Below, in pieces: positions 29,613-63,012 of a stretch of DNA of 64,000 nucleotides (positions are counted from its first letter, which is position 1; each line of letters starts with the position of its first letter). The translations under genes and the position numbers were made by a program. A model generated the notes under the pieces. The model was not told where the DNA came from and ran no database searches. It saw only the letters and a list, made by a program, of their open reading frames with translations. The DNA lies in the NCBI RefSeq assembly GCF_041956535.1, contig NW_027192202.1, forward strand, positions 666,870 to 730,869. Direction: 5' to 3'. The DNA comes from Calcarisporiella thermophila CBS 279.70 (Eukaryota > Fungi > Calcarisporiellomycota).

Positions 29613-29937
29613 GTTGGCGGCGCCTCAAACCAATCCCCACCCCCTAATGAAACCAGACAATTTAGACCGATTTGTTACTCGTCTTGTTATTCGTATATTT
29701 TTTTTTTCTAATTCTTCCCACACTCTCTTTATCACAGTATATCCATGGTATACAGATACACAATCAACACGTAATATTATCCTCTAGCGGTGTCTTTCCT
29801 TCATTTTTCTTTTTCCGTTTTAGTTTGATAATGCTTCTTTTCTTTTTGTCAACCTATCCACAATTTTTCATGTTCAACCATGCTGGATCCATCCATGTAT
29901 ATACATATACAGCTTCAATAAAAAGGGGAGCATCGAA

Positions 29938-32900
29938 TCATCCCAGACGCGGCTGTCCTCTAAGGAATGGTCGAAGCCGTTTCCTCTTGAGCGCCTCCGC
30001 CTCCGCCTCCTCCTTCTCCTCTTCTTCTTCGGAGTAGCCCTCCTCCTGCCTTGAGAAAATATCGAAGCGGGAATCCTCGCTCACCGATCGATCACGGCTC
30101 CAGGGGGAAATTGCTCCGTCATCGATCATATGCCCAAATTCGTCCTCGTAGTCATATGCATCCTCGCCACTACTATAATCATAACCAGAGTAATACTCGG
30201 GCCAGAGTTCTTCATCCTCATCATAGGGGTTTTCATCATCATCATCATCATCATCATTATCTTCCTCATCCTCTTCCCCTTTATTCTCTTCCCCTTTATC
30301 CTCTTCCCCTATACTAGTCGCACTGCTCTGACTTCCACTTGCACTGTTTCCCATGAGCAACGAATCCAGTTCACTGGCTTTGGGATCGTCGTCAACCACA
30401 ACTTGCATGTGCGCGCTTTTGCCCGTGTCTGGTTCAAATCCTTCACGAGCAAAGAGTTCTTTCATTTTTTCGCGCAATGCCCGCTCTCGCTGGAAGAATG
30501 CTTCATCATTCTCGTCATCGCTCGAATCAATCACAAACTATGTAATTGTCGCAAAGTAATTAATGGAATGGGGACAAGATGACCGAGAATGATCCCGTGG
30601 ACTCACCTGTGCAGATTTATAGGAGACGGGCTCTTCCATCTTCCTTTTCCGCGGCTCTCTCTTCTCATCGCCCTCCTCTTCCTCCGGGTCTCGCTTCTTC
30701 CGTTTCGCGCGGGGCTTTTTCTTCGATTGGCCGGCTTTAGGAGGCTTTGCGACGTACTCGTCGAGCAACCTTGCGTCAAGCTCAAGATCGGCAGTACTGA
30801 CGGTCGCTGGGACAGTCCACCTCCCGGTTGCTTCGGCGATCTTTTCAAACTGAAGCAGCGCCATTAGGTGCTCCATCTTCTGGGCTGTCGAGGCCTGGAT
30901 GGCGCTCGCCTTGTCCTCTTCCATTTCGAGCCTTACATCGCGGTACTCGATCAGTTCTGCGTCTCCCTCCTCTCTGTCACCCTCTAGAATTCCTCGCTCC
31001 TCCAAAACAAGGCGAATACCTTTCTCGACCCACCTGACCCATTCCGCCTGTCCATCCTTTACAAGTGCGGCCACTGCCATCCCCAGTTTTTGACTCCAAG
31101 GCATCCCTGGTTTGATTCTCTCTTCAGGCACCCACTCTCCATCCTCTTCTTCGCCATCGCTCCACATCCTCTTCCCACGACTACCGCTGTTCTCTTGGCT
31201 CGTGGCTTCGGAAGGATCTGGACCGGTGATGCGTCGAATGTCTGCGCTGGACTTTGGAAACAGAATCTCTACGCACATGAGTGGGTTAGCAGCCCAGGCC
31301 TTGAAGAACCGACGCAGGCAATAGAGCATGAACTTGTGCAGCTCGGCGTGTGCCTGCGATTTAAAGGGGGGTGGGTGGTCGTTAAGAATGGCGTTGAAGA
31401 TCTCCAGGACCGACAACTGTGGCCGCCATGAACGAGAGAGGGTAGGGTAAGTAAACAGGAAGCCAATCTGGATATTTTTACACAACCATGCACTATAATA
31501 AACCGCCTCTCACCTTGAAAAATATGGCCTCCTTTCTCCTACATTTAACCATGATACGGTGGAATGCCGCCACTATATGGTAGAGCGTCTCCTCCGAGAG
31601 GTCGGCATATTCCTCCAGCAGGACCATGTAGGTTGTGACCACGCTCTCTGTGGCCAGTTTCTAACAATGGAAAGAAAAAAAAAGGAAAGGCCATCAGTCT
31701 AGCTGGATGGGAGGCACTAACGGGTCCTGTCAATACCTCTTGGAATTTTTCGAATTCAAAGCTTTTCTCTACAAATTCCAATCGTTCTTCTCGACTCCCT
31801 CCCTCTCCCTCGTCGCCCTCGTCCTCTTCATCCACCCCCGCCTCGGTTCCATTCGCGCCCACATGATCCGCATCGTTTTCCTCGTCTCGCTGCTCCAGCG
31901 CCCGTTTCTCCCCCTCTCCTTTACTCTTCGGCATCTTTCTCTTGCGCTTCTTTTGCCGGCGGCGCACAAACAGCTTCCCTCTCTCCTTCACGAATCCCTC
32001 CAGCACTCGCATCAAATGATGATTCATGGCCACGACCGCGCGTAGATATTCCCGGGACTGGCTCTCCTTGCAGGACTTGACAATCTCGGCCGCAAGATCG
32101 AAAACATAGGCATCATAGAAGAGGTTGTGTTGGATGTGAAGGGAGACCGCACGATACTCTTCGTGAGACGACTTTTGCATAGATTGAAGGGTGAGTAGCT
32201 ACATGTGCAGGACATGGGGTAAGGGAATCAATACAGGTGACTGGGAGCAGAATCTTAATGAGAATGGAAGACTGTTACCATTTGGCCGAAGCAATCCACT
32301 GTCATATGCAGCTCGTTCCATCTCTTGTAAAAAGAAAAAACACGTATACTTGTCAGGGGGATCGGGTGCAAACCTCTTGGAGAGAGGGAGAAAAAGCAGC
32401 TTGTGCGGATCTCTTTACCCTTTCTTCAAAGCTGGTCCGCATCCGCCGGACAACAAGAAAGAGGCTCCTCACGTCGAGCATACTTGCCACCAGGTCAAAG
32501 GAGTCTGGCAGCGCCAGTCGTTGAAAGCGCAGGAAAAATCGGACCAGGTAGAAAAAGTGCGCGTAGTCCTCGTTGCGCAGGGAGTCCTTTTCCTGCTCGA
32601 TGTCGCGCTTAATTAAGGGGAAAAAGGCTAGAAGAGGGAGGCGGTGGCGGGAGGGGAAAATGGAGGGTGTTAAACTTAAATTCGGAAACATGGAGTCTAA
32701 ATGTACAAATTTGAAACCCATACTATTGAAAGCGCTCTCGAGAAAAGATTCGCAGAATTCCTTGATACACAAAAGACATTTCCCGTTTTTGATCCACGCC
32801 CGCCTGTCATATGCATCCTAAACGGGAAATAGGGGATAGTTCGGTCAAGGTGGGGATCGAGACAAATGAAAATAGTTGCCGGAGGGATGATTACTAGCTG

Positions 32901-34350
32901 AGGCCGTGACCGCCGAGCCTGCTTCGCCTTTCCTTCGTCCCAATTCTTGGGCATTTCATCAAACCACTGCTTTTGCTTATGGGTCAGTACCCGCTGGCCA
33001 TCAAAGAACTTCAGTGCGATGGTCCCTCCGAACCGTGAGTGGCGCCCGTCGCTGCCGCGGTTTCTCCGTCGTCGCTCACGCTCTTCAGCAAGGAATTTTT
33101 CTCGGAGTTGCGAAGATGCGTTCTGATGGATAAAAAAAAAACCCCCCAGGGAGAACGATAGCCGATTCTTTAGAAAACCATCGAAGCTTTTCGGGAGAAT
33201 GAGGGTAAAGTTACCGTCACCTCCTCCTTGATATCCACCAGAGAATCCGGCTCTATCCGCAGAAGTAGGCCATGTAGGATCTCCTGGACAAGGGTTGTCC
33301 ACTCGCTGAATTCCTTCTCGTCCGCAGAGGATGCAAAAGTCAGTAGAAGTTCGAGCACATTCGCTTCTTTGAGCTGGATGATAAGCTCTTCCTAATGGCA
33401 AAAAAAAAGAGAGTGTGTGGAAGGAAGCGGGGGGTTATTTTGAAAGCCCACGATCGGCTCTGTCAATACAAGCCCAACCACGCACCTGCATCAGGCTTCT
33501 CTGGATTTGACTGTAGGTGGCCGTGGAGTGGACGATCGGGTCTCGTATAGCAAGTATGTTGCGGAAAAGAGCAAGGACGAGGCGAATAATCTCCGTCTGC
33601 CGCGCAGAGCGCTCTCTAGAAAGCACGCAAAACTGTGGTGAATAATTCCTGGCTACTGCAAGAAATGGAAGCTCGCGCTTACCGATAAGGAGTCGTGAGC
33701 GGCTTCAGCAGCACATCCATAATAGCTTCGATCACCTCCTTCTGCATCAGATGCCACTTGAGGTCGGGGAGGATACGGGAGGCTATTGTCAGGGCCGTCC
33801 CTGCCTTTTGTACGTTGAGGAGGTCTGAAGTTGTGACGGGCCAAGTCATGGGCACCATTAGTTCGACTAAGCAAGAAATGGAGAGAGCATAAGAAAAAAG
33901 CGAGGAAGCGGGCGCAGCAATGCAACGGGGTGCCATCGATTCTCACCACATGCCAGCGCGATCCGCTCCTGGTGCGGGGAGTCTCCCTTCGCGTTGAGGA
34001 GCAGTATGGGAATCAGGTCGAGATCCACGAGCGACATCTCAAACAGGGTCTGCAGCACGAACTTATCGGGATTGTCGTCATCTTGCCGGATCATTCGCTT
34101 GAGATCCTTGAGACATTCTTTGAGAGAAAAGAAGAGAGAATGAGCATGCGGGCGGGATGGAGAGGCGTCTGATCAATAGCTACGCACCTAGACACTCATC
34201 GCCCATAACGTACACCTCCTCGTACCGCTGTGTCGCCTGGTTGAAGCGGCGCTCCATGCCGCCCAGCGATGAGCAGGTGCTGATGAGGAAGGTTCTCAGC
34301 TTGTTCCATTCCTTGTGCCATTCGGCGATCGAATCCGACTCGTTGTCCAT
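29938..34350 (-). CDS. TOF1: Timeless/Tof1/Swi1 replication fork protection protein (~11 introns)
   Basis: SLGG...YVMGDECL|ECLKDLKR, ELMVPMTWP, LVLALFRNILAI, RHSRFGG, acidic C-terminus. Confidence 0.92.
30233..30257 (+). repeat. (TCA)n microsatellite encoding poly-Asp in the Tof1 tail
   Basis: tcatcatcatcatcatcatcatca run; read as GAT repeats on the minus strand. Confidence 0.85.
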
Positions 34351-34393
34351 CTTGCGCCTGCGATGCCGGCCGCTCTAATAAAAAAATAACGAG

Positions 34394-34408
34394 ACGCGTT
34401 TTTTCGTG
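34394..34408. promoter_or_regulatory. Adjacent MCB (ACGCGT) and SCB (CACGAAAA, minus strand) cell-cycle boxes upstream of TOF1
   Basis: ACGCGT at 34394-34399 and TTTTCGTG at 34401-34408, ~45 bp upstream of the TOF1 ATG. Confidence 0.6.
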
Positions 34409-35068
34409 TTCTCGCACCCGCACCAAACAGGAAGGCGGAGAAAAAGGAATAGTGCTGTGCCACGTCAGCGAGATAGGCAATGTGATAAGGGCGATATTCA
34501 GCAAATTTCCACATCCGCTTATCTCTGTACAGAAAATGTTAAACAGTTGGACCGGCGTTGAGGATTAAAAAAAAAAAGAGTGGCAAAGTGGAAATGTGGT
34601 GAGATTACTAAGGAGCCGATGTATATTGGACAATAAGGCGGTCTAGAAATTGTCCCATTCTCTAACCCCTGCATCACCCTTATTCGTTCTGATTTTTATT
34701 TTTTTTTTCACACTTTTTTATGTGATCGATCAAGTCAATTTTTAGAATTGCTAAATGATTAAATGGTGTTTTTATTTTTTCCCTTTCCTCCCTCTTTAAT
34801 CCACTTTTGCGCTTCCTCTTATAAGGCCGCCTCTGTCTTTCTTCGTCCGGATCGCTCTTGTGCTTTTCCTGATTTTTTTCCCCTCCGCCTCTTTCCCCTC
34901 CCTCTCTCCCTCCCCCCCTCCCCTTTCGGCCTTGCTGCTTCTTCCCTAGAAATAACACAAAACCATACTTTTTTGTGAAGTGTGGTCCGAGTGGAAACAA
35001 GTTTTTCGTTTTAAAACCAAAACTTCTTTTACCTCTCCCGCTTATAATATAATTATTCAAAAACCAAC

Positions 35069-36859
35069 ATGCACTCTACCAATACTCCTCTACGCATACT
35101 GCACTACACCCCTCACCACGGCACCGAGGGCACGACGCTGTGCGTTGCGCTGCACCCGCCCGCCCCCATGAACCTCAAGCTGGGCATTGGGGCGCTCATG
35201 CTCGAGACCCTGCACTCGCATACCCCCGCCTACGACACGCTGACGGCCCAGGTGCCTCCCCAGCAGCAGCAGGAGCCGCGCGTGCCGGTGTTTGTGCTGG
35301 AGGTGGCAGAGGGCGCTATCGTGGACAAGAAGTTCGTTGGCGAGTTCATCTATGAGGAGCAGGGCGAGTATACGAGAAAGCGCAGTGGAGAGGAGGAGCT
35401 CGACCAAGTAGCAAGAAAGCGGCTCGGCAGTATCAAAGGTATGGCTATTTTTTCTTTACAAGAGCCCGGAGGAGGGAGGAGAAAGAGAGGCTGCTGAAGG
35501 TCAAGTGCGCTGACAGAGAGACGTTTTTATTTTTCATTTTTAAAGAGGACGACTACTTGGCCTCGTTCTACGGCCAAAACCCTGCCAAGACCTTTCAGCA
35601 GCACCAGCAGCCGTGGAAATACACGGAGGGTAAGAGTTTGAGCTCCTTCTTTGCGAGGGAATGCAGGCGAAGGAAAGCTAATGCCCGCGCCTCCCTTCTT
35701 CTCCTTAGCCGACCAGCCGCTCTATTCGCCGTCCTACGTGTACGGCCTCGGGGTTCCGCCCCCCCTCAACACCGACTTCCTCTACGCGATGCCGCAGCAG
35801 CCGCAGCCGCAACCCCAAGCACAGCCCACCACCGCCGCCCCTCACCACCCACACCACCCCGGCAGCGAGAACAACGTGCGTGACAACCTGCGGCGGCAAT
35901 ACCAGCCGCCGCTCCCCGGCGCCAGCACCCCCGCCGTCTTGTCCAACTACAACTTTTACGCTAGTCTTCTGAACAAGGCGAATCTGAAGTTCAGCGGCAA
36001 TCTCGATGACATGGCAAGAAATTGGTAAGGAGTTGGTTTATTTGCATTGCCCACTGGGGAGGGGGGGGGGGCCAAGAGAAAGAAGAAGAAAAGGAAGAGA
36101 GCGTGAAGGATTGACGCGTGCGTGTGCTATCCTTAGGTCGCAAGAGGAGTGGGAGAACCGCCGGCGGCTCGTGCAGTTTTGGCGCCGACAGGACGGCAAT
36201 GACATCCACTGCAACTTCTCGCCCATTGCCCCCGCGGACTGCTCGCCCAACTCGATCGTGGTGTCCTGCATCTACTGGCAGGAGAAGAACGACTGCTACA
36301 TCACCTCCGTCGACTGCATCTACTTGATGGAGTCGCTGATCGGCGTGCGCTTCACGGTCGAGGAGAAGAACCGGATCCGGCGGAATCTAGAGGGGTTCCG
36401 GCCGTCGACGGTCAGCAAGTGCAAGCCGGAGAGCGCCGAGTTCTTCAAGCTGATCATGAGCTTCCCGAACCCGAAGCCCCGCAACATAGAGAAGGACGTG
36501 AAGGTGTTTCCGTGGCGGGTGCTGCCCTTTGCGCTGAAGAAGATCATCAGCAAATACGTAAGTGGCCGCGCGAGAGTTTCTCCTCCCCTCCCCCATTCGC
36601 ATGTGGCTTAACCCATTCTTTCCTCCGGTTTGCTTTCTAGACCGCAAGCTATAGCAGCACCGCAAGCGTCAATGTGGATGCATTCCAGGAATCCTACCAG
36701 CCCTCATCCGCGCCGCAACTTCTCCCCAACAGCCAGCATCCAATGCATCTGCACAATGCCAATGGGGACACGGAGCCCCCGCTGGGCTTCTCGGCATCGG
36801 GCGGTCAACATCTAGAGGTCGATGAGGGCGCAAAGCCCGGACATTTGATGGTGCCATGA
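35069..36859 (+). CDS. medA: Medusa (MedA)-like developmental transcriptional regulator (4 introns)
   Basis: KANLKFSGNLDDMARNW|SQEEWENRRRLVQF...SCIYW...ITSVD...FTVEEKNRIRRNLEG...PKPRNIEKDVKVFPW...ALKKIISKY. Confidence 0.88.
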
Positions 36860-37973
36860 GATTGATTTACACTACACTTTATTAATTTCTGTAATATTGT
36901 TTTCTTTTTCTTACAATTGTATTTTGAGTATATTATTTGTGTTCTGTTGTACTTTTGGCCGTTTTGGTTTAATTTTTTTGTATTATGGCAAAGCCCCCCC
37001 ACGTCCATAAATAATAATGGAAATGCTAAGCGAGACCAGGTTGGATGGCCGTCGCGGCCCTGGGGAGACGGCTGAGGAAATGCCCTCCGCCGTGGAGGCT
37101 CTAGAGGAGCCCACGCAGCAAATGGGCGAGGAGCGTTCTATTTCCGTTCCCGCGCTAGATTAATTTTGGCTGACTTTGATTGCTCGCCGACCGGAATGGA
37201 TAAAGTGGAATCGACGTGGTGCGGAGGCTCCCCACCTGGAGGGAGGGAGGGATGCTCCAGCCAGCCCCTCAGCGGGCCAGGCCCTCACGATTGCGCCCGC
37301 CTCCATCGGGCGCCAGGCCCCATGGATCCTCGGCCGGGTGCTTTCTTCGGGGGCCTGATTAGGCAGGCGTGGCGAGGGGCCACGGAGCGGCGGGTGGATC
37401 GGCAGCCGGAACCACACTGGTTAGGCCGTGGGCGCGCGGGAGGCGGCCAGCCAGAGGGCCGAGCGACAGAGCCAGCGGTGGGCCGCGGCGCGAGCGAGGA
37501 GTAGTTTGGCGGCGAGCCGAAATGGAAAAAGGTGGTGGAGGGTGAGAAAGGGAAAGGATCTGCAGGGGGATAAACGAAAACACTCGGGGTCAATTAACCT
37601 TGTGCGCTCATTGGTTTTCGGGCGGTGGTTAAGCCACCGAATTTCGAGGTGGATCACGCGACGTGGTGTCTTCTTGCTCTCCACTTTTTTTTTTCCCTCT
37701 CCTAAAGCCAAATCCGTTTCCCGGTTAAAAGGTCTCACAAATCGCTTGCCTCCGCCTTTAAAACCAAGACTCTATTACGTTTTTTCCCACTCGCCTCCCC
37801 CTAGACAGTATTTATAATATATTCTCTCGCCTATTGTATTTATTCCCGCCGCCCTTCTCCCTGGCTCTCCCCATCTATTACATTGCGGCCTCATCCATCG
37901 CTATTGACCCCCAATCCCTCCTCCCCAACCCTCCCAATCCCGCTCTCACGCAAAGCGAAACGCTCTTACCATC

Positions 37974-39573
37974 ATGCTCGAGCCACTGAATGTAAGCCGT
38001 GTGCGGACTTGCCCTTCTCTCTTTCTGGATGTATTAAATGACGCTTGCCTTCATGTAGAATGATCCCTTCCATTCCCCCCCGCGGGAACGCCCCATCCCC
38101 ACGCGTAGTCTCAACGGCGGCGGCCATGGTGGCGGTGACGACAGCTGGAAGGCCGTGGGGAGCCCCCCGCGGCGCCTCTCCTCATCCATCACCTCCACCA
38201 CCCCCACCGCCATCGCCTTCCCCGCCTTCCCATCCGCGCTCTTCCTCAACAGCCCCCCGCTGCACTCGCCGCCCCTGGTCCCCCCCGCCTCCGCGCCGGC
38301 ATCGAGCCCTTCTGTGGAGAACCGATTCTGGGCCAACTCTTTCGGGCTGCCGGCGTGGTCGCCCGCCGACAAGGTCGAACTCTTCTCGGAGAGGCTGCCG
38401 ACCATGCCGGAGGAGGAGGGGATGAGCGGCGAGGAGATGGACCCCCTGGGCCTGGCTGGAGAGCGGAGGCGAAGTCGGTCCAAGTCGTCCGCCGCCGCGT
38501 TTGGTGGATTGCGCGCGTCACAGGACCTCACAAGGCAGGGGGCTTGGTCCGGTGGCTGGGACCCGAGCTTCCTCACCGGCCACCGGCGCGCCTCGACCAC
38601 CTCCTCCGCTTCCCCGCTGGTTGATCTGACGGGAGAGGGACAGGACTCGGTGCAGCGCCGTCTCTCCATGGCACCCGTCTCCTCGGCTTTCCAGAAAGAA
38701 GAGCTCAGGTAGGCTCTCCCCCTCCCCCTCCCCCTCCCCCTTCCCCTCCCCCGTTACTAACGCTCCTGTCTATGTCGCTTTTAGCTCCCTGGAGGTCGAG
38801 TTCGGGCAGCGGCGCCATTCTATCTCAACCACCATGGAGCACATCCCCGACTCTGCCCTTCACTCGGGCATCCCGCAGGCGCACTCGCCCACCACCCCCA
38901 CCTCCACCCTCGGGGAGGCAAAGTCCGGCTCCCCCGAGCTGCAGGAGATGGGCCGGGGAATCCCGCTGTACGCTCTGCCGCCCAACCACCAGGTGTGCGT
39001 GGTGGAGTTCAAGGCCGGGCGCACGGACATTTTCTACGCCCAAGGATTTCGGGTTCAGACGGGCGACCTCGTGATTGTCGAGGCCGACCGAGGCAACGAC
39101 CTGGGCAAGGTCGTCAACGACCATGCCGACGTCGAGTGGAGCGGCGCGGATCCCGCCAGCCAGAAGACGGTGCGGGCCAAGCGGATCTTCAGACTCGCCC
39201 AGCCTGGAGAGGTGACCTCGCTGATCAGCAAGAGCTACGACGAGGCCAAGGCGATGAGCGTGTGCTTGAGTAAGGTGCGGGCCAAGAACATGCAGATGGA
39301 GGTGGTGGATGCCGAGTTTCAATGGTAAAGCCCAGCCCTTCATGTCCTGTCGGTCCACCGACAGTAACCCCCCCCCCCCCTCCCTCCTAACCCCCTGCTT
39401 CTTATTCTTTTGTGGCCACCTCTAGGGATCGCCGGAAACTCACTTTCTACTTTGTTGCTGAGCATCGCATCGACTTCCGGGACCTCGTCCGCGATTTGTT
39501 TAAAATCTACAAGACACGCATCTGGATGTGCGCGGTCGACCCCGTCACGTATCGGCCCAAGAGCAACAGCTGA
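37974..39573 (+). CDS. PSP1 C-terminal-domain protein (3 introns)
   Basis: [12 protein letters not shown]...[17 protein letters not shown]...VVDAEFQW|DRRKLTFYF...[21 protein letters not shown]. Confidence 0.9.
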
Positions 39574-40232
39574 ACGCTCGATTCTCCTCCTCCCATTTCT
39601 AAGTGTATATATCTCTTTCTAGCTTGCTATCTCCTCTATACAGCCTCTACCTATTTTATCAAAGTACACGATCCAAAAAAAAATGAGACTGTTATCATCT
39701 CAAAAATATATATTCTTTTTTTTTTTTACTCTTATATCGATTCTTCATTTTATATATATAAATATATATATATTCGTAGATTTCTTTTCATTTGGTTGTT
39801 TTTGCAGCAGTAGTTTTTTTTCCTTCTCCTCTCCTCCGTTAGATTTCTTTTTGTCGTTTGGTTTGATCTCTTTACAAGAAGCCTAGTTATTAAATTTTGT
39901 CTTTGCATGTTTATTAATATAGCGTTTATTTTCTTTTCGTCGGATTTCCGATTGGAACAGTGCTGAAGCCCTCTATGCGATCAACCAATGCGGTGCGTGC
40001 CCTTTGAGCCTCCTCCTAACCTAACTACCCCACCTTACTAATGATCTCGGTTCGACCACATAACCTGCAGTCTAGCTAAGCCTCTATCCCTGGAAGATAT
40101 TTAATCTCTGCGGTATTCGTCAATGGAAATAGAGCTATGGTTTTAATTAGTTATCTGGCCTTGCGCGCCAGACACTTTCCCACCCTCGCTTTGTCTCCAA
40201 GTTTATTGAAAATCCCCTTGCGAACATACACC

Positions 40233-41013
40233 ATGTCCCACCAACATTGCGTGCAAAAACGTGTTCTTCCTGGAAATCCTACCGGAAAAAACATTAAAAT
40301 CGGCGGCCTCGACGCGTATCACGCCCAACCAGCCTCTCCGTCCGACAAGGGCATCCTTATTTTCACCAATGTCTTTGGCCTGTCGCTGCCCAATGTGAAG
40401 TTGGTTGCAGACCAGTTTGCACTCCATGGCTACCAGACTTTCATCCCGGGTAAGTGGATGCGAAGCAGATCCGACCCACAATGTTAACCTTCTCGACAGC
40501 TAGTCTAAGTGATTTGGCTTCCTGATAGATTTCTTCCGAGGAGATGTGCCCGATATAAACAACTTCTCTCCCTGGCTGGAACGAAATCCCGTCCGTCGGG
40601 CCATAGAGGAATCGGAACCCATTGTGGAGGAGATCCGCTCGAAATACGGGATCAAGAAGCTGGCGGGTCACGGCTACTGCTACGGGGCCAAACCGGCTTT
40701 CCACTTCAATATTGCCGGGAAGCTGGACGCCATCGTCGTGGCGCACCCAAGTTTCGTTACGAAGGAAGATATCAAGGCGGTGCCGGGGCCAGTGCTTTAT
40801 TTATGCGCGGAGGTGGACGAACTGTTTACCGACGAATTGCGGGCATTCGCCGAGGAAGAAATGAAGAGGCGGCAGGTTCCCTCGCGGTTTGTCCTCTATC
40901 CTGGCACCGTCCACGGGTTTACATTGCGATACGAACCCGACGATCAGGAGGCGGCGAAAAAGGCCCAAGACGCCCATGAACAGGCGCTCAAGTTCTTTGA
41001 CGAGCATCTTTGA
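40233..41013 (+). CDS. Dienelactone hydrolase family protein, copy 1 (1 intron)
   Basis: GYCYG Cys nucleophile, AEVD acid, VHGF His. Single intron ~40450-40529. Confidence 0.92.
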
Positions 41014-41724
41014 TTAGCTTTGTAATCCACGTTTTCCCCATATTGGGTTTGTTTGTTTGTTTTTTTGCTTGCAATGTTGATTAAGTGATGGAATGGATGA
41101 GCACGATTTTCCGTTCCACCTATTACTCTTTGCAACTACACATATCGAGGAAACACGGAAGCTCTAATGCCATTACTGCATACGTACTGCTTCTCAGCCA
41201 GCCAATTGTGTTGGAGAGCATATGATTTTTTTCTCTTTTGTCCGTTTTCCATTGTACATTAGTTTTATGCGGCGGTCGCTGGCCTTTACCACCGCACTTT
41301 ACTCTCCCTTGGATTTCGCATTGAAGCCTTAGAATCCGTTCAATCTGCCTCCGTGGATATGTAATAGGCAGCTATGCATTTTTTTACAATGACGGAAATC
41401 GATGAAAATCACGACGGCTGACTAATGGTAGGAGCCCTTGGCCATGTGTTTTCCAATGGTTGTCCTTGGAAGTGGCATATTTAGACTAGCATTGAGACTC
41501 TTATGTCACGCACAAGGCAAAAATTCAATCTGGTATATGAGCTTGTTTCTGGGCAAATTTCTTACCGTGGAATTCGGATCCAAGGTACAATTATTTCCCG
41601 CTTGATCACCAGAAAAATATATTATAAATTAATTCGAATCCTCTCCGATTCTTGGCTCCTCCGTTTTTGCATCCCCCCTCCCATTCCGAGCATATCGACA
41701 TTCTCTTTGCAAGCATACCTCATC

Positions 41725-42497
41725 ATGTCCCACGAACATTGTGTGCAAAAACGCGTTCTCCCAGGAAATCCTACCGGAAAAACCATTAAAATCGGCGCCC
41801 TCGAAGTATATTACGCTGAACCAGCTTCCCCATCCGACAAAGGCATTCTTATCTTCCCGGACGCTTTCGGGTTATCGTTGCCCAATGTAAAGTTGGCTGC
41901 GGACCAATTTGCACTCCAAGGCTATCATACATTCGTACCAGGTAAGTAAATGCGATTCATACCCGAATTCAAACCGACGCTCAACTGTGTACTTGGAATA
42001 TTGACTGGACAGATTACTTCCGTGGAGACATTCCCGATGTGAATAATTTCCACCCGTGGATAGAGCGAAACCCGGTTAGTCGCGCCATAGAGGAATGCGT
42101 CCCCATTGTCGAGGAAATACGCTCAAAGTACGGCGTCAAGCGGCTGGCGGGCCACGGCTACTGCTACGGGGCCAAGCTCGCCTTCCATTTCAACATTGCG
42201 AGGAAACTAGACACCATTGGGGTGGCGCACGCGTCTTTTCTCACCCAAGACGATATCAAGGCGGTGCCCGGACCGGTGCTCTATTTGTGCGCCGAGGTGG
42301 ACAGGCAGTTTACTGACGAGTTGAGGATATTTGCCGAGGAAGAGATGAAGAGGCGGCAAGTTCCCTCGCGTTTTGTGTTCTACCCTGGGACCGTCCACGG
42401 GTTTACCATGCGATATGATTCGGAGGACCAGGAGGCAGTGAAAAATGCACAGGATGCCCAAGAACAGGCAACCAAGTTCTTCAAGGCACACCTTTGA
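41725..42497 (+). CDS. Dienelactone hydrolase family protein, copy 2 (1 intron)
   Basis: Same triad motifs and intron position as copy 1. Ends ...FFKAHL. Confidence 0.92.
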
Positions 42498-42629
42498 TTA
42501 GTTTTTTTTTTGTTAGCCATCTCACCTTCATGTTAATTTGTTTCTTTGAATAAACGATTAAGTGATTGATCAGCGGGGCTATTTGCCCCTCCCTCCCCCA
42601 GGTTTCTTCTATAGATTCTGTTGTAACCG

Positions 42630-43160
42630 ACACAGCCACAGTAGGGCTCTGAAATTACTTCAATGAGAGGATCTGCCTCACTAGACATATTGTGTAGGAA
42701 TTGTTATTTTACTTACTTTTTTTCATTTTGTTCGTGTCTTCTTAAATTCTCCTTTACCTAGTACGTTAGTACGGACGTTTAGAGCAATATTTATTTTCCA
42801 TACTTCTAAGACTTACTCTTTGCTTTGCATTTTCTTCTCATCTTAGAACTATGTTAAATTTGTATTTTTTAGGGCCTATATAAATTTGTATTTTTTACGA
42901 TTATGAATTTATTGGATTGAATTAGGATGGACTCTATGCGATTGTGTCGTTCGACACGCCCCTTTCCAATCACTCGCCTTTATCGCGTAGTCCGTCGACT
43001 CCGTGGATGTTCAGGCGTCTTTCAATAGGCTGTTGTTGTACCGCGTGATATATAGCCTCAATCTATTTGCCAGACTCAGGTGGCGCGATTTGGTGTCAAA
43101 CCCATCCCCGCATTAGACTGCCAAGCCTTGATATATAAATCTATGCATATCTAGATCTTC
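42630..43160 (+). repeat. Direct repeat copy A: DLH-type promoter upstream of CYP51
   Basis: Long near-identical blocks shared with 45830-46295 (tagagcaatatttatt.tccatacttctaagacttactctttgctttgcatttt; gggcctatataaatttgtattttttacgattatgaatttattggattgaattaggatggactct; ttgatatataaatctatgcat). Confidence 0.92.
43132..43139 (+). promoter_or_regulatory. TATA box (TATATAAA) of CYP51, inside repeat copy A
   Basis: Consensus TATA ~200 bp upstream of the ATG. The same TATA occurs at 46268-46275 upstream of DLH copy 3. Confidence 0.65.
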
Positions 43161-43337
43161 AGATAATATACAATATTCCATTGACAACCGTTTCCGCTCT
43201 TCCATTGCCAACATAGCTACCCATTGCCAAAGCCTCGAGCCATCAACATCCGCGGCGTATCGTAGTTTTATTCTTCATTACCAAGCACCTTGCGGCCGAG
43301 GTGCTATATCCTTTCATTTGCTGAATCCTTCCCCGAC

Positions 43338-45347
43338 ATGGCATTCTCCGTGTCAGAATTCGACAAGATTACCCATCTATTGGGCTACCCTATCTTGGTG
43401 AAGTGGAGCGGCGTCATCGCTGCGCTTTTTACGATTGTTGTGTGTAATTATTTGCGTCTCCTGGTAAGTATTTTTTGTTTATTCGTGTTTTTTTTTGCTA
43501 TAGCTTGCCACTTCGTTTGTGTTTGAATAAAAAGTGGAATTATCACCCATCTTTGACATTCGTAACATAATCCATTGGTTTGATGTCTTCTACTAGATAT
43601 TTCGCGACAACAAAATCCCGCCGCAAGTGCCTTACTTCATCCCGTTCATTGGTTCGCTGTTAGATTTTGGTCTTGATCCGCTGGGATTCTTACAAAAGAA
43701 TCGCAAAAAGTATGGCGACTACTTTACGTTTAATTTGGCAATCTTGAAAGTCACGGTCTGTCTGGGAGTGGAGGGCAACAATTTAGTATTTAATGCGAAG
43801 CATTCGCACGTGTCGGCCGAGGATATCTACACCAATCTCACCACCCCGCTATTTGGCACCGGCGTCGTGTACGATTGCCCGAATGCGCTCTTGATGGAGC
43901 AGAAAAAATTCATGAAGTTTGGCCTCACCACTGAGAATTTCCGGGCCTACGTCCCAGCGATCGAAGAAGAAACCCGGCAATATCTCCAGCGCTGGAACAA
44001 GAAGAGCGATCGAGTCGATTTGGGCAAGGCCATGGCCGAGCTCACCATCATGACCGCCTCCCGCTGCCTCATGGGCAAAGAGGTTCGCTCACTTTTGGAC
44101 GAAACTGGTAAGCTTCTTCCCTCTTTATGTTTGATAAGTGATCTTCCGCTTCACTTTATAGTGTGTTTTTTTTTATCTGGAAACACTCAATTCCTCTGTT
44201 AATTTTTATTTTATATCCCACAGTCGCCGGCCTGTTTAAAGATTTGGACAATGGATTCCAACCCATTAACGCAGCATTCAAACATCTCCCTCTCCCAAGC
44301 TATTGGAGGCGTGATACTGCACACGTAAAAATGCGCAACCTATTCATGGATATTATGAAGAAGCGAAGGGCAACTGGTGACATGGTATGTAGACACTTTT
44401 TTTATATAGTATTTTCGTTTTTCATTATTATCGTGAACTTTTTTTTTTTCACTACTTCTGACAATTCTCATAATCACTCTCTATTTTCACCATCCATCAG
44501 AACAACAACGATATCATGCAATCTCTCATGGACCAAGAATACAAGAGTGGCCAGAAAGTCACAGATCAAGATGTCGCCCATATGATGATTGCGTTGTTGA
44601 TGGCCGGCCAACATTCCTCCTCTGCCACCTCCAGTTGGTCCATTCTCCATATTGCCAAAGACCGAAAATTGTTGAACGAACTGCGAGAAGAACAAATTCA
44701 GGTCCTGGGATCCTTGAACGAGCCATTGTCCTATGATAAATTGAAAGAGCTGCAACTTCACGACCATGTCATCCGTGAATCACTTCGGATGTACCCCCCC
44801 ATCATCATGGTTCTGCGCAAAGTCAAGCAGGATCTGCCAATTCCCAACACCAACATGGTGATTCCAAAAGGCCATTGTGTAAGCGCTTCCGCCGTGATTT
44901 CTCAATACGACGACAAATACTTTGAAGACCCGTTGACCTACAACCCGCATCGCTGGGAAACCATCACCGAGGCCGACGACGTTGTCAACGAAGACTATGG
45001 CTGGGGTACTGTCACCGGAGGCAGGAGTCCTTATCTACCCTTCGGAGCCGGTAAGACTCTGTAAAATAGGCAAAAAAAAACTGCCACATTTGTTTATTTG
45101 ATATTTAGAATGATGGTGCTAATAACGTTATCTTTTTTTTTTCTCGTGTTCCTCGCTAGGTCGTCATCGTTGCATTGGTGAGACTTTTGCCTACGTCCAA
45201 TTAAAGTCTATCATCGCTACTTTTGTGCGCATGTTTGATGTCGAGCTCACCGAAAAGGGACTTCCAAAAGTGGACTATACCAAACTCTTTACTGGCCCTG
45301 TGGCGCCTGCGGAGGTTATTTACACTCGACGAAACGAGAATGACTAG
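43338..45347 (+). CDS. CYP51: Sterol 14-alpha-demethylase-like cytochrome P450 (CYP51/ERG11 family, 4 introns)
   Basis: AEDIYTNLTTPLFGTGVVYDCPN, EQKKF, I-helix MAGQHSS, ESLR (ExxR), heme motif PFGAG|RHRCIG. Confidence 0.93.
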
Positions 45348-45829
45348 TCCCCGGATTAAGTGTTTAGTATATATCGTAGCGCAAACAATTTTATTTTGTT
45401 CAAGATAGTACTTTTAGATATCCAGTCTGTCTTTTTTGTATAGTGATACCTTCGGGTGGGATTTTTATGTTGAAAAATTACTCGGACCGAAATAGAAATC
45501 CAGAATTATATTAATTTAAATAGTTTCTGGAGTTTTTAGAGTTACTGACAGAATTGAATATTGTCTGCTTATGGGAAGAGTCTTTCCACACCTAAAAAAT
45601 ATTTTAAATAAATAAATGAATATTGTACCCCATCTTTCATACAAAGCTTCACCATTCTTCAATACACCGACGACCGGGACAAACGGCCCTATTTTGTTTC
45701 CTCACAGGCAATAAATTCATTAGTAGAATTTGCTCCGTCCGATGATATTCTAATTACTTTCATGTCTCACCTTCCCCCCGGTACACCCTTGGGCACGCCT
45801 TGTAGTGATTCGTGTGAAAAAAACACAAG

Positions 45830-46295
45830 ACATAGCCACGGGGATTACTCTAAAACTATTTCAATGGGAGGATTTGCCTCCTTACTAAAGAGATATTATA
45901 TAGGAATTGTTATTTTACTTATTTTACTTATTTTACTTTTACTTTTTCATTTTGTACGTGTCTTCTTAAATTCCTCTTTGCTCAGTACGTGTTTAGAGCA
46001 ATATTTATTATCCATACTTCTAAGACTTACTCTTTGCTTTGCATTTTCCTCCCATCTTAGAGCCAAGTTGTTAAATTCGTGGGCCTATATAAATTTGTAT
46101 TTTTTACGATTATGAATTTATTGGATTGAATTAGGATGGACTCTGCGATTTTGTTGTTGTTGTACCGCGCGATATATTTACTAGTTTTTATCCAGCTCTA
46201 TTTGCCAGGCTCTGATGGTGCGATTTCGTGTCCTATATTTCCCCCGCACTGGACTGCCAGGCGTTGATATATAAATCTATGCATTTGCAGATCTT
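45830..46295 (+). repeat. Direct repeat copy B: promoter upstream of DLH copy 3
   Basis: Homologous to 42630-43160. Carries a (TTATTTTAC)x3 expansion and lacks a ~90-bp block present in copy A. Confidence 0.92.
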
Positions 46296-46383
46296 AAGGA
46301 AATGTGCTAGACCTTTATTCATTTAATACCCGTTTCATTCCACTTCCAGGCCGACAGCAATTCCATATACTATATAATACAGC

Positions 46384-47181
46384 ATGTCCCACGAGTATTG
46401 TTTGCAGAAACACCGGGAAATCCTGCTGGGAAAAGCATCAAAGTTGGCGGTCTCGACTGTTATTATGCTAAATCTATCTCCCCGTCCGACAAAGGAACCC
46501 TAATCTTCACAGATGTCTTCGGCCTGTCGGTATCCAATGTGAAGTTGGTTGCCGACCGATTTGCACTCCAAGGGTACCCGACATTTGTACCGGGTAAGCT
46601 GAAGTTTCTATATTTCCTAAACTCTTAGAAGAGTTGTCAAGCGCCGAGGATCTATGCTTATTCTTAAACGACACGTTTGAAACCATTTCTCAACTGATTT
46701 CTTCCGGGGAGATTTGCCCGACACGAGTAATTACTGGCCCTGGGCGGAGCGCAACCCCATCAGCCGAGTCTTGGAGGAAGCTGAACGCATTATCGAGGAA
46801 ATCCGCTCGAAATATGGCGTCAAGAGACTAGCAGGTCATGGGTATTGCTATGGAGGCAAATCCACCCTTATCCTCAATATTGCAGGGAAGCTGGACGCGA
46901 TAGCAGTGGCCCATCCCTCCCTCCTTACCGAGAACAATCTTAAGGCCGTGCCTGGGCCGGTGCTTTATTTATGCGCGGAGGTGGATGAAATGTTTACCGA
47001 GGATTTACGAGCTTTTGCTGAAGAAGAGATGAAGACGAGGAAAGTTCCATCGCGGTTTGTCCTCTATCCTGGCACCGTCCACGGGTTTACGTTGCGGTAC
47101 GACTCCGACGATCAGGAAGCGGTGAAACAAGCGCTCGATGCCCAAGAACAGGCAATCAAATTCTTTAACGAATATCTTTGA
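46384..47181 (+). pseudogene. Dienelactone hydrolase copy 3, probable pseudogene
   Basis: 7-nt deletion after codon 9 relative to paralogues (AAA CA CCG vs AAA CGC GTT CTC CCG), giving a frameshift and stop at ~46501. The 3' splice acceptor AG is TG at 46695-46696. Confidence 0.85.
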
Positions 47182-47780
47182 ATGCTTTAGGATCCACGGT
47201 TTCTTCATGTTTGTTTATTTGTAAGTTTATTTTTTAGTTTATTGATTTATAGAATTAATACTGGAAACAATTAAACCATCCACCACTCCATGATTTGTGC
47301 CGTGGGATTATATTAGCAGGGACAAGAGGACAAGAATTCTCTAGTATAATATCTAATTGAACATCTCTACCACGTGGATGTATTGGTGAGTATATTTAAA
47401 TTACTATACTGGTTGTTGGTATCCCTAATCGCTTAAGCATTGGAAAACAAAACTCGCCATCTGAATCAATAATACAAGCCAGCAATGAAAAATTTCTGTT
47501 CATGACAGCTCATCTTCTTTTCCATCTATTTATTTCTAGAGCACTGGCATGCCGGGATAACCGCCAACCTCGCCAAATCCATTTTTCTCTTACTTAGACC
47601 GATTTTGCAGCAGTATCTTCCCACGCTACTGTTAGACCTCCTAATGTTTCGATTTCTTTTTAGGATAAAATCTTTCAAATTTGGTGTTTATGCTTATTTT
47701 TATTGCATATTTATTTGTTTTTTATCCGCCGATAAAATTACATATTTGAAATAGACACTATCTTACTAATCGATAAAGTC

Positions 47781-48000
47781 ATTCAATACGCGCCAATAGG
47801 TCTCCTTTAGCGCGTAGCCTGTCATCTCACACACTCACGCGTCTTACAATAGGCCCATGGTTCAACCGCACGACCAAAACCCATGCTAAAAGCCTTTGTT
47901 GCTTGGATGCCATATGTTGCGCGATGGTGCCGTAATCGGGAAAAATTTTCTGCACTGGGTTACAAAACTTGATTTGTTATCTGTGCATTTCTAGCTTTTC
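47781..48000 (+). repeat. Diverged third copy of the DLH promoter, upstream of DLH copy 4
   Basis: ccaat...cctttagcgcgtagcc...gcgtcttacaataggc and gcactgg...cttgatttgttatctgtgcatttctag align colinearly with 42945-43160. Confidence 0.7.
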
Positions 48001-48093
48001 TGGCAGAGAACTTGGCACTTGTTCACATTCACACCCTCTCCCCTTTTCTGATATCATCGCCATCCTCATTGTGAGCCTACTGCTTATCACAAC

Positions 48094-48892
48094 ATGTCCC
48101 ACGAACATTGTGTGCAAAAACGCGTTCTCCCGGGAAATCCTACCGGAAAAGAGATCAAAATCGGCGGCCTCGACTGCTATTACGCTGAGTCAGCCTCTAC
48201 AACCGACAAGGGCATCTTTATCTTCACGGATGTCTTTGGATTGACGGTACCGAACGTGAAATTGGCTGCGGACCGATTTGCCCTCCAGGGTTATCATGTG
48301 TTCGTACCTGGTAAGTGCAGCTTATTCTCGAATCTCATGGAGTGGCCATCGGGATGACATTGGCCTTTGAACACTTGATAACATGCGTGACGCCATTTTG
48401 ACGACAGATTTCTTCCGAGGAGATTTGCCCGACCTTAACAATTTTGGGCCCTGGATGGAGCGCAATTCTTTTAGCCGTATCTTGGAGGAAGCTGAGCCCA
48501 TTATCGAGGAAATCCGCTCGAAATACGGAGTCAAGAAGCTTGCGGGCAAAGGCTACTGCTACGGAGCCAAACCCGCTTTCCTTCTTAGCATTGCGGGAAA
48601 ACTGGACGCCCTTGCTGTGGCGCATCCCACTCTACTCAATAAGGACGATCTCAAGGCGGTGCCAGGGCCGGTGCTCTATATTTGTGCGGAAGTGGACCAA
48701 CAGTTTACTGACGAATTGAGGGCGTTTGCCGAGGAAGAGATGAAGAGAAGGCAGGTTCCTTCGAAATTTGTGTTCTATCCTGGCACCGTTCACGGGTTTA
48801 CTATGCGATATGATCCGGATGACCAGGAGGCAGTGAAAAAGGCACACGATGCCCGGGAACAGACGATCCAATTCTTCGAGGAACACCTCTAA
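48094..48892 (+). CDS. Dienelactone hydrolase family protein, copy 4 (1 intron)
   Basis: Intact GYCYG/AEVD/VHGF motifs and a canonical intron at the shared position. Confidence 0.92.
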
Positions 48893-57180: not shown

Positions 57181-60100
57181 CTAGGATGATGAGGGGTCGA
57201 ACACTGCCTCTAAACTCTTTGGAATATGGCCATGATGATCTAAATTTCCGGCATCGTTGCCAGCCGAGGATTCCCCATTCCCGTTTACCCCCAGCATGTT
57301 CTTCAGCTTTTCGGCAAGCTCGTGCCCAAGCAGTTGGTTGAATCGCCCCCGGGAGTGAGCCAGGAGCCGAGCAGGAGTGTCGAATTCCGCCACCTTACCA
57401 TCATCCATTACCAGTATCTTGTCCTTTTAACAAAAAGAAAAGGGGGTCAATATACTATTTATTGATAATAGGGTAGAATTCAGAATGATTACCGCTTCTA
57501 TAATCGTGTTCTGCAGTGAGGTGAACATTAAAAAATAAGAGATCAATTAATTTTACTCTAATCGGACTTTATAGTCTCTATAAGTTCTTACCAAACGTCT
57601 AGCTATCATCAGCACTGTATGATCTTTGAAATTCTTTCGTATTGTTTCGCGAATAATCGCATCGGTATGCAAATCTACCGCGCTTGTTGCCTCTATTTAC
57701 GAAACAATTAGTTCAAGAGAAATTGTTATACAGCCGTAAATAGGTCTATGCACACTAACCGTCAAACACAACAATTCGACTCTTCACCAAAATTGCCCTC
57801 GCGATACAGAAGAGCTGTCGTTGACCTAGCGAAAAAGTGCGCCCATTATCTACAACAGGGGTGTCTATTTTCTGCGGCATGGATCGAATTTTCTCGTCCA
57901 GGTGAACAGACTTCAGAGCAGACCAGATGGTTTGGTCGTCACATTGGTGGAATGGATCCAGGTTACTACGGATAGTGCCAGAAAAGAGCACCGGTTCTAA
58001 GTGGAAAGAGTCAGTAGCTGCAAACATTTGAGCATTAAGATGAAATTCACCTTGAGGGATGACAGCAATCACATTCCGCAGATTACGAAGACCGGCATTG
58101 CGGATATCCACGTCATCTATTAAAATCTGGCCTTCACTTGCCTCCACAATGCGGAGCAAGCTAATCAACAGGGTCGTCTTTCCAGAACCTGCTTTTCCTA
58201 CGATTACCACCTTTTCTTTTGGCTGAATATGAAAAGAGACCTTTTTAAGAACGGCATGGCCATATCGTTGGTATCGCAGCGTGACTTCTTTGTACTCGAT
58301 CTTGATAATAGTTACGTGGGTCAGATCCAAACCGAATATTTTCGGGGAATTCAAATGTTAGATCCTGATACTCACTTCGCCTTTTTGTGGCCAGTCTTCT
58401 GGAATGCCGCTATCCTCGATCACATGCGGCTGTTCAATCGGGATGTTCTTCCCATAGTAACTCAGTTGCTCCACGCTCTCCATTGCCAATTGGGCATCTT
58501 GGAGATGTCGAAGTACACGTTGTCCAAAAAGAAGTATCTGCAGGGCATTGGTAAGCGCAAGACCAGCAGTAGCAGCATCCACCTGCCACCACCCAAATTG
58601 CCTTTGGAACACAACTAGAAATAGCGCTGAAATGTAGACAAATAGAGAAGCGAGGAAGTCCAAATAGAGGTACAGCCAAGCTTTGACTAATCAAAAGATA
58701 AAATTGGTGTTAGAGTGGCAGTGCCAGCTAATCAACGTTCACATTTTACCTTGCATCAATCCGAACAGCGCTCTGTGATTTGTGTCTATCCGATCTAAAT
58801 TTCGCGCATCGAACGAGGATTCTGCGTGATAGACTCGGATGGTATGAAGTCCCTCAAGCGTAACGGAAAGCAACGAAAAGATGGGACCTTTGCTGTCCGC
58901 TATATTAGTGGCCAAAAATCGGTTAGTACTCCATCCAATTATGGAGAAAGTGTCCTAGAAAACTCCTTCATTACCATCAAGCTCCTTGAGTCTGCTCTCG
59001 GTGTCAACGGAAAATATCATGAGCAGCCACATCAGCCCTATCAGGACTATTACGGGTCCAAATGCAAATGGCACCACAACACACACAAGAATTACTGCTC
59101 CAACAACAATGGGTAACACATGTAGGGTTTGCAGTGCAGCGTCCGTCAGCACATCATCCACCGTGTTTTGATGGCGGGCAAACACACTTAGAATCCTGGC
59201 CAGTGGGGTTATATCGAAATAGGACATGGGCGCACGCAGGATACGCTTGAAGATGCGATCATGTAATGCAGCGCTCTTGCGTACCATAACCGCCGTGTAC
59301 AAAGAATACCGTACAAAAGCGCCCAATAAAATGGCCGCCACCATACCGCCGTATACACCCAAGAAGTACTGCACCGTAATTGGCCCGGCCACTGAGAACT
59401 TTAGCCACCAATCACTAACTATTCGCACTGCCTGCACGACGAAAAAGAGAACGATCACGGAAAGCGAGAAAGTTGCGCCAGGGTTTTTACAGATAAACCA
59501 CCACACCACGGGCCACCCTGTGCGTATTCTCTTCTGTCTCTTTAGAACTACTAAGCCAGTTTCTGGATCGATCGCCGCTGAGAGCACACCCTCTTGTCCA
59601 CTTAGTGAGTGAATTGTCAACTGGTTTCGCTCAATGGTGCGCTGTGCCGCGCTCATCTCATTAGCACCAGGCGATTGGGGTAGCTGGCTGGGTTCCACGA
59701 TAATGGAGCCTCGCTCCATCATTTGCGTCAGGGCGATCTCAGGGGGCGGCTGAGTACTTGCCAGAGCATTCAATTGATCATCGCCATGAGCTTCGTGCGA
59801 AACGGGCTGAGACATATCCTTTACGTCCGCATTTTGCACAATTGAATTGGGAATCATAGGCTGACTTGAGAGTGTAGGAGACCGATGCGCCAAGGATTCA
59901 GGAGCAGAAGAGAGTGTTTCTTCATCTTCTGCCTGGGGTTTCAGGAAGTCGCCTCCACTATCTTCAATCTGATCGTCTAAATCTTCGATCTCTGCAGAGT
60001 CTCCAGCAAGAGCGGCGAAGTTTACATCTTTGGCACAAAGCTCGTCATAAGTGCCTTCGTCTTCAAGGCTTCCATCTTTCATATACAGTACATAATCGCA

Positions 60101-62444: not shown

Positions 62445-63012
62445 GTTTTAAGGAACTGGAGAAATAAATAGAGGATTTTTTTTCAGAAAAGGCGAAGAAA
62501 TAGAGCACTGTACTTTCACAATGGACGAATAGAAGAGGAACGGGGATTAAAGCAAATAAATATATATCTCGATGAAGAAGAGAAAATAAGATGCGAGAAT
62601 GCCTTAAATACCTCTATAATTGTTGGACGAAGAGGGGAGATAATGCCTCTTTGATAGCGTGTGTAACAGAAAATTAGGATGGGAAAAGGTGGATATAAAG
62701 TGATTTATGGAATCTGTTTAAAAAAACTCACCGTTGCATTTGCTAGTTTAAGAAATCCTCCAATCTTTTCTTTACTGCTCAGGTTAGGTTAGTGGGCGAT
62801 TGGTGCCATATTATGCCCCATAACTTTAATCCGCTGCAGGTTTATCTATTTTCTGTTGATCAATCTTCCCCTCACAATTTTGTTCGTGCTGTTGTAGTAA
62901 TCTTGGGATGATGTACTAGCATTTCAACATTTCTTCGAAATTATCCATCACGTTAATCTGTATCTGTACAACTAGCTAAATTCTCATCCAAGATTATTTA
63001 ATTCAGAATACA

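Follow-up and report, generated by a model that had tools for sequence, protein, structure and literature searches.

We analysed a 64-kb stretch of DNA (hereafter the window; contig C12:666870-730869) from the assembly of the thermophilic, early-diverging fungus Calcarisporiella thermophila, which has 28.2 Mb in 116 contigs. The subject is an intact five-exon gene (VTP21DRAFT_1827) for CYP51, the sterol 14-alpha-demethylase that azoles target, placed between the second and the third gene of a four-gene tandem array of dienelactone hydrolase (DLH) genes, and in particular the DNA that lies upstream of it. The order is DLH1, DLH2, CYP51, DLH3, DLH4, and the plus strand is used throughout. A preliminary description of the same DNA had given the order DLH1, DLH2, repeat A, CYP51, repeat B, DLH3 and DLH4, all on the plus strand, and exon coordinates and alignments bear this out. 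Calcarisporiella thermophila stands alone in a phylum of its own in the NCBI taxonomy, which explains why the searches met with no close relative. The features, in window coordinates and with the evidence for each, are the following.

40233-41013, plus strand: DLH1 (VTP21DRAFT_1825, 233 aa), exons 40233-40449 and 40529-41013; Pfam DLH match, database protein P0002, codon alignment
41725-42497, plus strand: DLH2, exons 41725-41941 and 42013-42497; DNA alignment and translation
42498-42628, plus strand: 3' flank of DLH2, outside the repeat; edge of the A/B alignment
42629-43268, plus strand: repeat A, a DLH-type spacer with putative promoter and 5' untranslated region, then a DLH start relic; alignment to B and to the DLH4 upstream region
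42948-43030 (about), plus strand: 83-nt CCAAT block in A; present in A and C, deleted in B
43269-43337, plus strand: unique 69-nt leader from repeat A to the CYP51 ATG; alignment edge
43338-45347, plus strand: CYP51 (VTP21DRAFT_1827, 511 aa); sequence reading, Pfam p450, PDB matches, database protein P0168
45348-45828, plus strand: 3' flank of CYP51, unique in the genome and with no DLH remnant; self-comparison, genome and profile searches
45829-46404, plus strand: repeat B, the DLH3 upstream copy and the first 21 nt of DLH3; alignment to A
46384-47181, plus strand: DLH3 (annotated as VTP21DRAFT_1829, 253 aa), exons 46384-46593 and 46697-47181; DNA and codon alignments
47575-48095, plus strand: copy C, a diverged homologous spacer with putative promoter upstream of DLH4; local alignment score against shuffles
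48094-48892, plus strand: DLH4 (VTP21DRAFT_1830, 233 aa), exons 48094-48310 and 48408-48892; Pfam DLH match, database protein

The DLH genes have two exons each with a phase-1 intron, and only these four of this type exist in the genome. The DLH domain (PF01738) was found in DLH4 with an E-value of 1.2e-30 (107 bits against a cut-off of 21), and exon-level matches were obtained for DLH1, DLH3 and DLH4. DLH4 is 98% identical to VTP21DRAFT_1830, while DLH1 and DLH3 match VTP21DRAFT_1825 and VTP21DRAFT_1829, respectively. GYCYG(A/G)K with the predicted nucleophile motif G-Y-C-Y-G, AEVD, and GTVHGF with the predicted histidine motif VHGF are kept in all four copies, as motifs of a putative Cys-His-Asp catalytic triad. 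The nearest Atlas clusters of the array proteins are plant DLH and animal CMBL, which places them in the CMBL-like eukaryotic branch of the family; solved DLH structures resemble them weakly (E-value 2e-8). The array is a lineage-specific set of four CMBL-like, predicted cysteine-type dienelactone hydrolases. At the C-terminus of DLH2 (42483-42497) we found AHL, a tripeptide like the type 1 peroxisomal targeting signal (PTS1); the other copies end in EHL or EYL.

The upstream region of CYP51

Self-comparison of 39-50 kb returned the DLH units, at 69-76% DNA identity, plus one further repeat, 42647-43162 against 45848-46298. Pairwise alignment extended it to 42629-43268 (A, before CYP51) and 45829-46404 (B, before DLH3). 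The two copies are 87.4% identical over 501 aligned nt (Kimura two-parameter distance 0.14), with mismatches at 63 sites (12.6% of aligned sites), 22 gap events and a perfect run of 72 nt. TATA-like elements occur twice in each copy: 42877 and 43132 in A, 46086 and 46268 in B. The statement of the preliminary description that about 0.5 kb upstream of CYP51, including a TATA box, copies the DLH3 upstream region is therefore correct.

The preliminary description had also named a dispersed miniature inverted-repeat transposable element (MITE) or an assembly artefact as a possible source of the repeat. We rejected both as almost certainly wrong: the repeat has just two copies in the 28-Mb genome, no terminal inverted repeats at A or B were reported in the self-comparison, and 63 differing sites with 22 indels are not expected of a collapsed or duplicated assembly.

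Copy B lacks an 83-nt block of A, and it has a (TTATTTTAC)3 expansion and a gained upstream ATG at 46302. The microsatellite (TTATTTTAC)3, at 45910-45938, is longer in B than in A. Repeat A holds a 26-nt tandem duplication (42846-42897, 84% match) with the TATA-like element TATA(T)AAATTTGTATTTTTTA, and copy B has the same duplication structure minus 8 nt.

Copy C, upstream of DLH4, is homologous to A over about 500 nt, with a local score of 67 against a shuffled null of 17.8 ± 2.4 (z about 20), and the A/C alignment runs exactly to the DLH4 ATG. For unrelated intergenic controls z was 0.6-2.7; the DLH1-DLH2 spacer reached 7.0 because the 3' flanks of the DLH genes are themselves homologous. 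Both A and C contain the 83-nt block, which has a CCAAT box (42966 in A) and carries the motifs CCTTTATCGCGTAG and GCGTCTTTCAATAGG; these two motifs of 14-15 nt occur without mismatch only in A and C within the 64-kb window. The block corresponds to the one of about 90 bp which, as had been claimed before, is missing from B and kept by a diverged copy before DLH4.

The 3' end of A (about 43244-43268) preserves a relic of roughly the first six DLH codons, with the ATG lost to a 2-nt gap. When CAACA--TCCGCGGCGTATCG of A is aligned with CAGCATGTCCCACGAGTATTG of DLH3, 13 of 19 nt match just where colinearity predicts (binomial p about 3e-4). The junction between DLH-derived and CYP51-linked DNA should therefore lie near 43268, 70 nt before the CYP51 ATG. 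The 840 nt from the DLH2 stop to the CYP51 ATG are made up of 130 nt of DLH2 flank, 640 nt of repeat A and 69 nt of unique DNA, so any promoter of VTP21DRAFT_1827 would lie largely within DLH-derived DNA. There is no ATG between 43146 and 43337, the roughly 195 nt preceding the CYP51 ATG.

Because A is colinear with the DLH4 upstream region, keeps the block which is lost in B and ends in a DLH start relic, it is well supported that the CYP51 upstream region is of DLH origin, with the polarity given by the third copy. The preliminary description had proposed this polarity for the promoter, and both the colinearity up to the DLH4 ATG and the start relic agree with it.

A longer trace of DLH exon 1, lying under the leader and first exon of CYP51 (43203-43400), was considered and treated as chance. 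Translated in the CYP51 frame, this region reached a BLOSUM score of 46 against the DLH4 exon 1 peptide and was the sole non-DLH window of 3192 to do so. DNA alignment to the four DLH exon 1 sequences gave z values of 1.7 or less, and a hidden Markov model of the four exon 1 peptides found no match in it.

The CYP51 gene, the fate of DLH3 and the history of the arrangement

The CYP51 model (exons 43338-43463, 43597-44107, 44224-44384, 44501-45050 and 45160-45347, with GT-AG introns) was searched exon by exon and later by way of the database protein P0168 (VTP21DRAFT_1827, 511 aa), which holds all five exon translations in order. The P450 domain (PF00067) was matched with an E-value of 1.5e-69. 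The heme motif FGAGRHRCIGE is intact and is split by the last intron at the exon 4/5 junction, and the CYP51 signature motifs are present in the B' helix (IYTNLTTPLFGTGVVYD) and the I-helix (AGQHSS). Among solved structures, Aspergillus fumigatus CYP51B matches best, over the full length (E-value 1.7e-134). Only two positions depart from the consensus (>=85%) of 49 full-length relatives: G to I in the beta-1 region, and GQHSS for GQHTS, the latter also seen in A. fumigatus CYP51B.

A second CYP51 in the genome, for which the preliminary description had suggested a search, does exist, and so does a third: VTP21DRAFT_1779, 104 kb away on the same contig, and VTP21DRAFT_9634 on contig C5. In a tree of 70 sequences the three Calcarisporiella CYP51s fall in three deep clades. 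The CYP51 of the window groups with those of Mortierellomycotina and Basidiobolus (SH-aLRT, the Shimodaira-Hasegawa-like approximate likelihood ratio test, 95), _1779 is sister to Mucoromycotina plus Endogonales (SH-aLRT 97), and _9634 goes with Kickxellomycotina and Entomophthorales on a long branch (0.95). Forcing the window CYP51 and _1779 into one clade was 50 log-likelihood units worse and was rejected by the approximately unbiased (AU) test (p 0.028, for a group picked after the tree was seen). Single-exon trees were poorly resolved and were not used. Two intron positions are common to the window CYP51 and a Funneliformis CYP51 and are absent from _1779. Based on tree placement, consensus fit and intron positions, VTP21DRAFT_1827 is to be read as an ancient and canonical CYP51, not a recent or neofunctionalised duplicate. 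The suggestion of a neofunctionalised paralogue thus fails on the canonical motifs, the two consensus departures and the ancient clade.

GC content at third codon positions (GC3) is 0.60-0.66 in the window CYP51 and 0.59-0.69 in the DLH genes, but 0.37-0.47 in _1779 and 0.28 in _9634; the paralogue loci behind this contrast are C5:1299801-1300458 and C12:606613-607249. The DLH-like GC3 of the window CYP51 speaks against a very recent arrival.

DLH3 has two lesions, a 7-nt deletion after codon 9 and an intron acceptor CTG in place of CAG or TAG. Its exon 2 is intact and the 7-nt deletion is the sole coding indel. The annotated DLH3 protein (P0003) has a contrived N-terminus, its frame being rescued by the upstream ATG inside B and by an alternative acceptor which skips FFRG. 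DLH3 is thus probably a recent pseudogene. In a codon alignment the DLH pairs showed synonymous divergence (dS) of 0.8-1.8 and ratios of nonsynonymous to synonymous divergence (dN/dS) of 0.09-0.18, and the pairs with DLH3 (0.09-0.15) lie inside the range of the others. Of private amino-acid changes, DLH3 has accumulated 19 and the other copies 10-15. Judged from these ratios, selection must have maintained DLH3 through most of the period after the spacer was duplicated, and both lesions would be recent. Its decay is much younger than the promoter duplication, because dN/dS is 0.09-0.15 and there is one coding indel against 22 indels in A/B. The preliminary description held that the DLH behind the sister promoter has decayed. 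This is right as to the lesions, and B does lack the best-conserved block, but the decay came much later than the duplication. The 7-nt deletion was also considered as a scar of the rearrangement and rejected, since dN/dS and the absence of other indels make the decay younger than the repeat. The deletion (46411) is about 10 nt past the point which matches the 3' edge of repeat A (43268); this closeness is unexplained or a coincidence.

The best explanation, to which we give a probability of about 0.65, is that CYP51 came to lie in the DLH array behind a duplicated DLH3-type upstream region by an old local rearrangement. A single local rearrangement would have put a 2.6-kb CYP51-bearing segment at the start of DLH3 and duplicated the spacer; as an alternative step, a spacer copy would have been pasted before a resident CYP51. 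Transcription of VTP21DRAFT_1827 would now start in the DLH-type promoter and pass through an ATG-free leader, and the gene would share cis-elements with DLH4 (the CCAAT block), formerly also with DLH3, while the enzyme would stay a normal sterol demethylase. The rearrangement would be old and not recent, with DLH3 long constrained afterwards and decaying only lately. The word "young" of the preliminary description does not fit, as the divergence of A and B comes to 12.6% of sites plus 22 indels, with identity down to about 72% at the 3' end.

Insertion of the CYP51 segment with spacer duplication is modestly favoured as the history, because it needs one event and leaves a spacer of normal length from DLH2 to the DLH start. 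In 24 loci of CYP51 relatives, 270 kb in total, no DLH was found nearby, and the CYP51-DLH linkage is therefore not deeply ancestral. The earlier claim that CYP51 is the newcomer is accordingly the more parsimonious reading but stays unproven, as no close relative turned up in the collections searched. No donor copy was found, the 2.6-kb CYP51 segment being single copy in the genome, nor was an empty ancestral site: the CYP51 neighbours of Mortierellaceae (HgmA, allantoicase) are on different contigs here.

It is possible, though we consider it rather improbable, that CYP51 already lay between DLH2 and DLH3 and lost its old promoter to a 0.64-kb copy of the DLH3 upstream region, which was pasted in at position -70 with about 20 nt of coding sequence. 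The newcomer would then be the promoter and not the gene. Such a history yields the same present-day structure. The GC3 of the gene, like that of the DLH genes and unlike that of the paralogues, fits long residence, and the missing donor and empty site agree with it as well. But at least two events are needed, the insertion of the copy and the loss of the old promoter, and the 751-nt spacer up to the DLH start relic would fit the normal DLH-DLH spacers (711 and 912 nt) by chance. The absence of the CYP51-DLH linkage from every relative sampled also speaks against a resident CYP51.

An ancient arrangement seems unlikely to us. On that view the array once had five DLH copies, A and B would be paralogous spacers dating from then, CYP51 would have taken the place of the fifth DLH body, and the centres would stay alike through gene conversion. 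It would account for the identity gradient (a 72-nt perfect run and 94-100% identity in the centre against 72% at the 3' end), which is improbable under uniform divergence, at about 4e-3 by estimate. The perfect tract is poorly conserved in C, so long-standing constraint is no explanation for it. Against this, neither DNA alignment nor the DLH exon 1 profile revealed any DLH remnant past codon 6 or so, whether behind A or behind CYP51, and the repeat flanks retain 88-90% identity, compared with about 55-60% (by eye) for A/C.

Several points weigh against the old local rearrangement which we prefer. Identity between A and B is uneven, falling from 94-100% in the centre to about 72% at the 3' end, and could reflect gene conversion instead of a single duplication age. 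The upstream regions of DLH1 and DLH2 have no similarity to A, B or C, so no single "DLH promoter" is common to the whole array. The closest relatives in the representative library, the word search and the metagenome contigs did not exceed about 55% protein identity. The group used in the AU test, as said above, was chosen with the tree in view.

Function and comparison with known systems

Co-regulation of CYP51 and DLH4 through the elements common to A and C is plausible. A further step is speculative, and we think it improbable: the DLH-type promoter would make CYP51 inducible together with DLH4 (formerly DLH3) by xenobiotics or stress, as a conditional second sterol demethylase, and the 0.6-kb repeats with their 72-nt perfect core would allow loss or amplification by unequal recombination, so that the locus would act as a reversible "promoter-trap" of the azole target. 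That the direct repeats A and B may serve as a substrate for unequal recombination had been suggested before, and it agrees with the alignment.

The preliminary description went further and proposed a co-regulated hydrolase and P450 module for the detoxification of, or resistance to, a lactone, an ester or a sterol-pathway inhibitor, in which CYP51 would confer self-resistance or have taken on a new function. This is doubtful. In its favour are the upstream elements common to CYP51 and DLH4, the CMBL-like DLHs, which by family are ester or lactone hydrolases, and, at a distance of 8-14 kb downstream, genes for an ABCC transporter and a putative Zn2Cys6 protein. On the other side, the CYP51 is canonical, the scan of the window turned up no core biosynthetic gene, two unrelated genes separate DLH4 from the transporter, and no paper was found which links DLH and CYP51 as a cluster. 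Among the 31 longer open reading frames (ORFs) scanned across the window, no Pfam family of polyketide synthase (PKS), nonribosomal peptide synthetase (NRPS) or terpene synthase was seen, though small or intron-rich genes could escape such a scan. The self-resistance idea is thus unsupported, no PKS, NRPS or terpene gene being among the scanned ORFs, and the reading as a young detoxification module is not supported.

The array is flanked by ordinary genes, a PSP1-domain gene upstream and one for a coiled-coil protein downstream. Exons of the ABC transporter (Pfam ABC_membrane and ABC_tran) are located at 57181-63700 on the minus strand. In 39-50 kb, no tRNA or Rfam family was detected. The genes at 27700-39600, upstream of the array, are far GC-richer (GC3 up to 0.82) than the DLH/CYP51 island with its AT-rich spacers.

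The literature search returned no paper on CYP51 in Calcarisporiella thermophila, and Calcarisporiella is not mentioned in a pan-fungal CYP51 survey. CYP51 families with several paralogues include Cyp51A/B/C in Pezizomycotina and a "Cyp51" group of early-diverging fungi (PMC9635630). Unlike Cyp51A/B/C of Ascomycota, each of the three Calcarisporiella paralogues belongs to a deep clade of its own within early-diverging fungi. With fungal CYP51/ERG11 in general, VTP21DRAFT_1827 shares the P450 fold, the heme motif FGAGRHRCIGE, the B' helix motif YTNLTTPLFGTGVVYD, the I-helix AGQHSS and the presence of several paralogues per genome; it differs in its upstream region, which is foreign and DLH-derived. 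If the captured promoter does drive the gene, the locus would show cleanly how a paralogue from an essential pathway is rewired in nature at the level of regulation, and it would help to understand the division of labour among several CYP51s in early-diverging fungi. Its value is limited in that the organism is not a pathogen and the event is old.

Self-resistance copies of CYP51 sit in clusters for CYP51 inhibitors, e.g. restricticin and lanomycin. The locus resembles these clusters in having an extra CYP51 copy beside non-sterol genes. It differs in that the neighbours in the array are hydrolases only, with no PKS, NRPS or terpene synthase in the scanned set, and in that VTP21DRAFT_1827 belongs to an ancient lineage and is not a recent divergent duplicate.

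Regulatory change at CYP51 is a classic route to altered azole sensitivity. Promoter changes linked with azole resistance include the TR34 and TR46 tandem repeats of cyp51A in A. fumigatus and promoter insertions or repeats in plant pathogens; known examples consist of short tandem repeats or inserted transposons within the native promoter of the CYP51 gene. As in TR34/TR46, regulatory DNA before CYP51 was restructured by duplication, and A holds a 26-nt tandem duplication with a TATA-like element. This duplication is partly present in B and is so not specific to CYP51. The event in Calcarisporiella is old, in an organism that is not a pathogen and has no known resistance phenotype. TR34 and TR46 are short enhancer repeats within the promoter of the gene itself, whereas here the whole 0.64-kb promoter of a different, unrelated neighbour would have been copied before an ancient canonical CYP51, in a phylum with only one sequenced species, and the polarity of what may be a natural promoter swap at the azole target can be read from a third copy.

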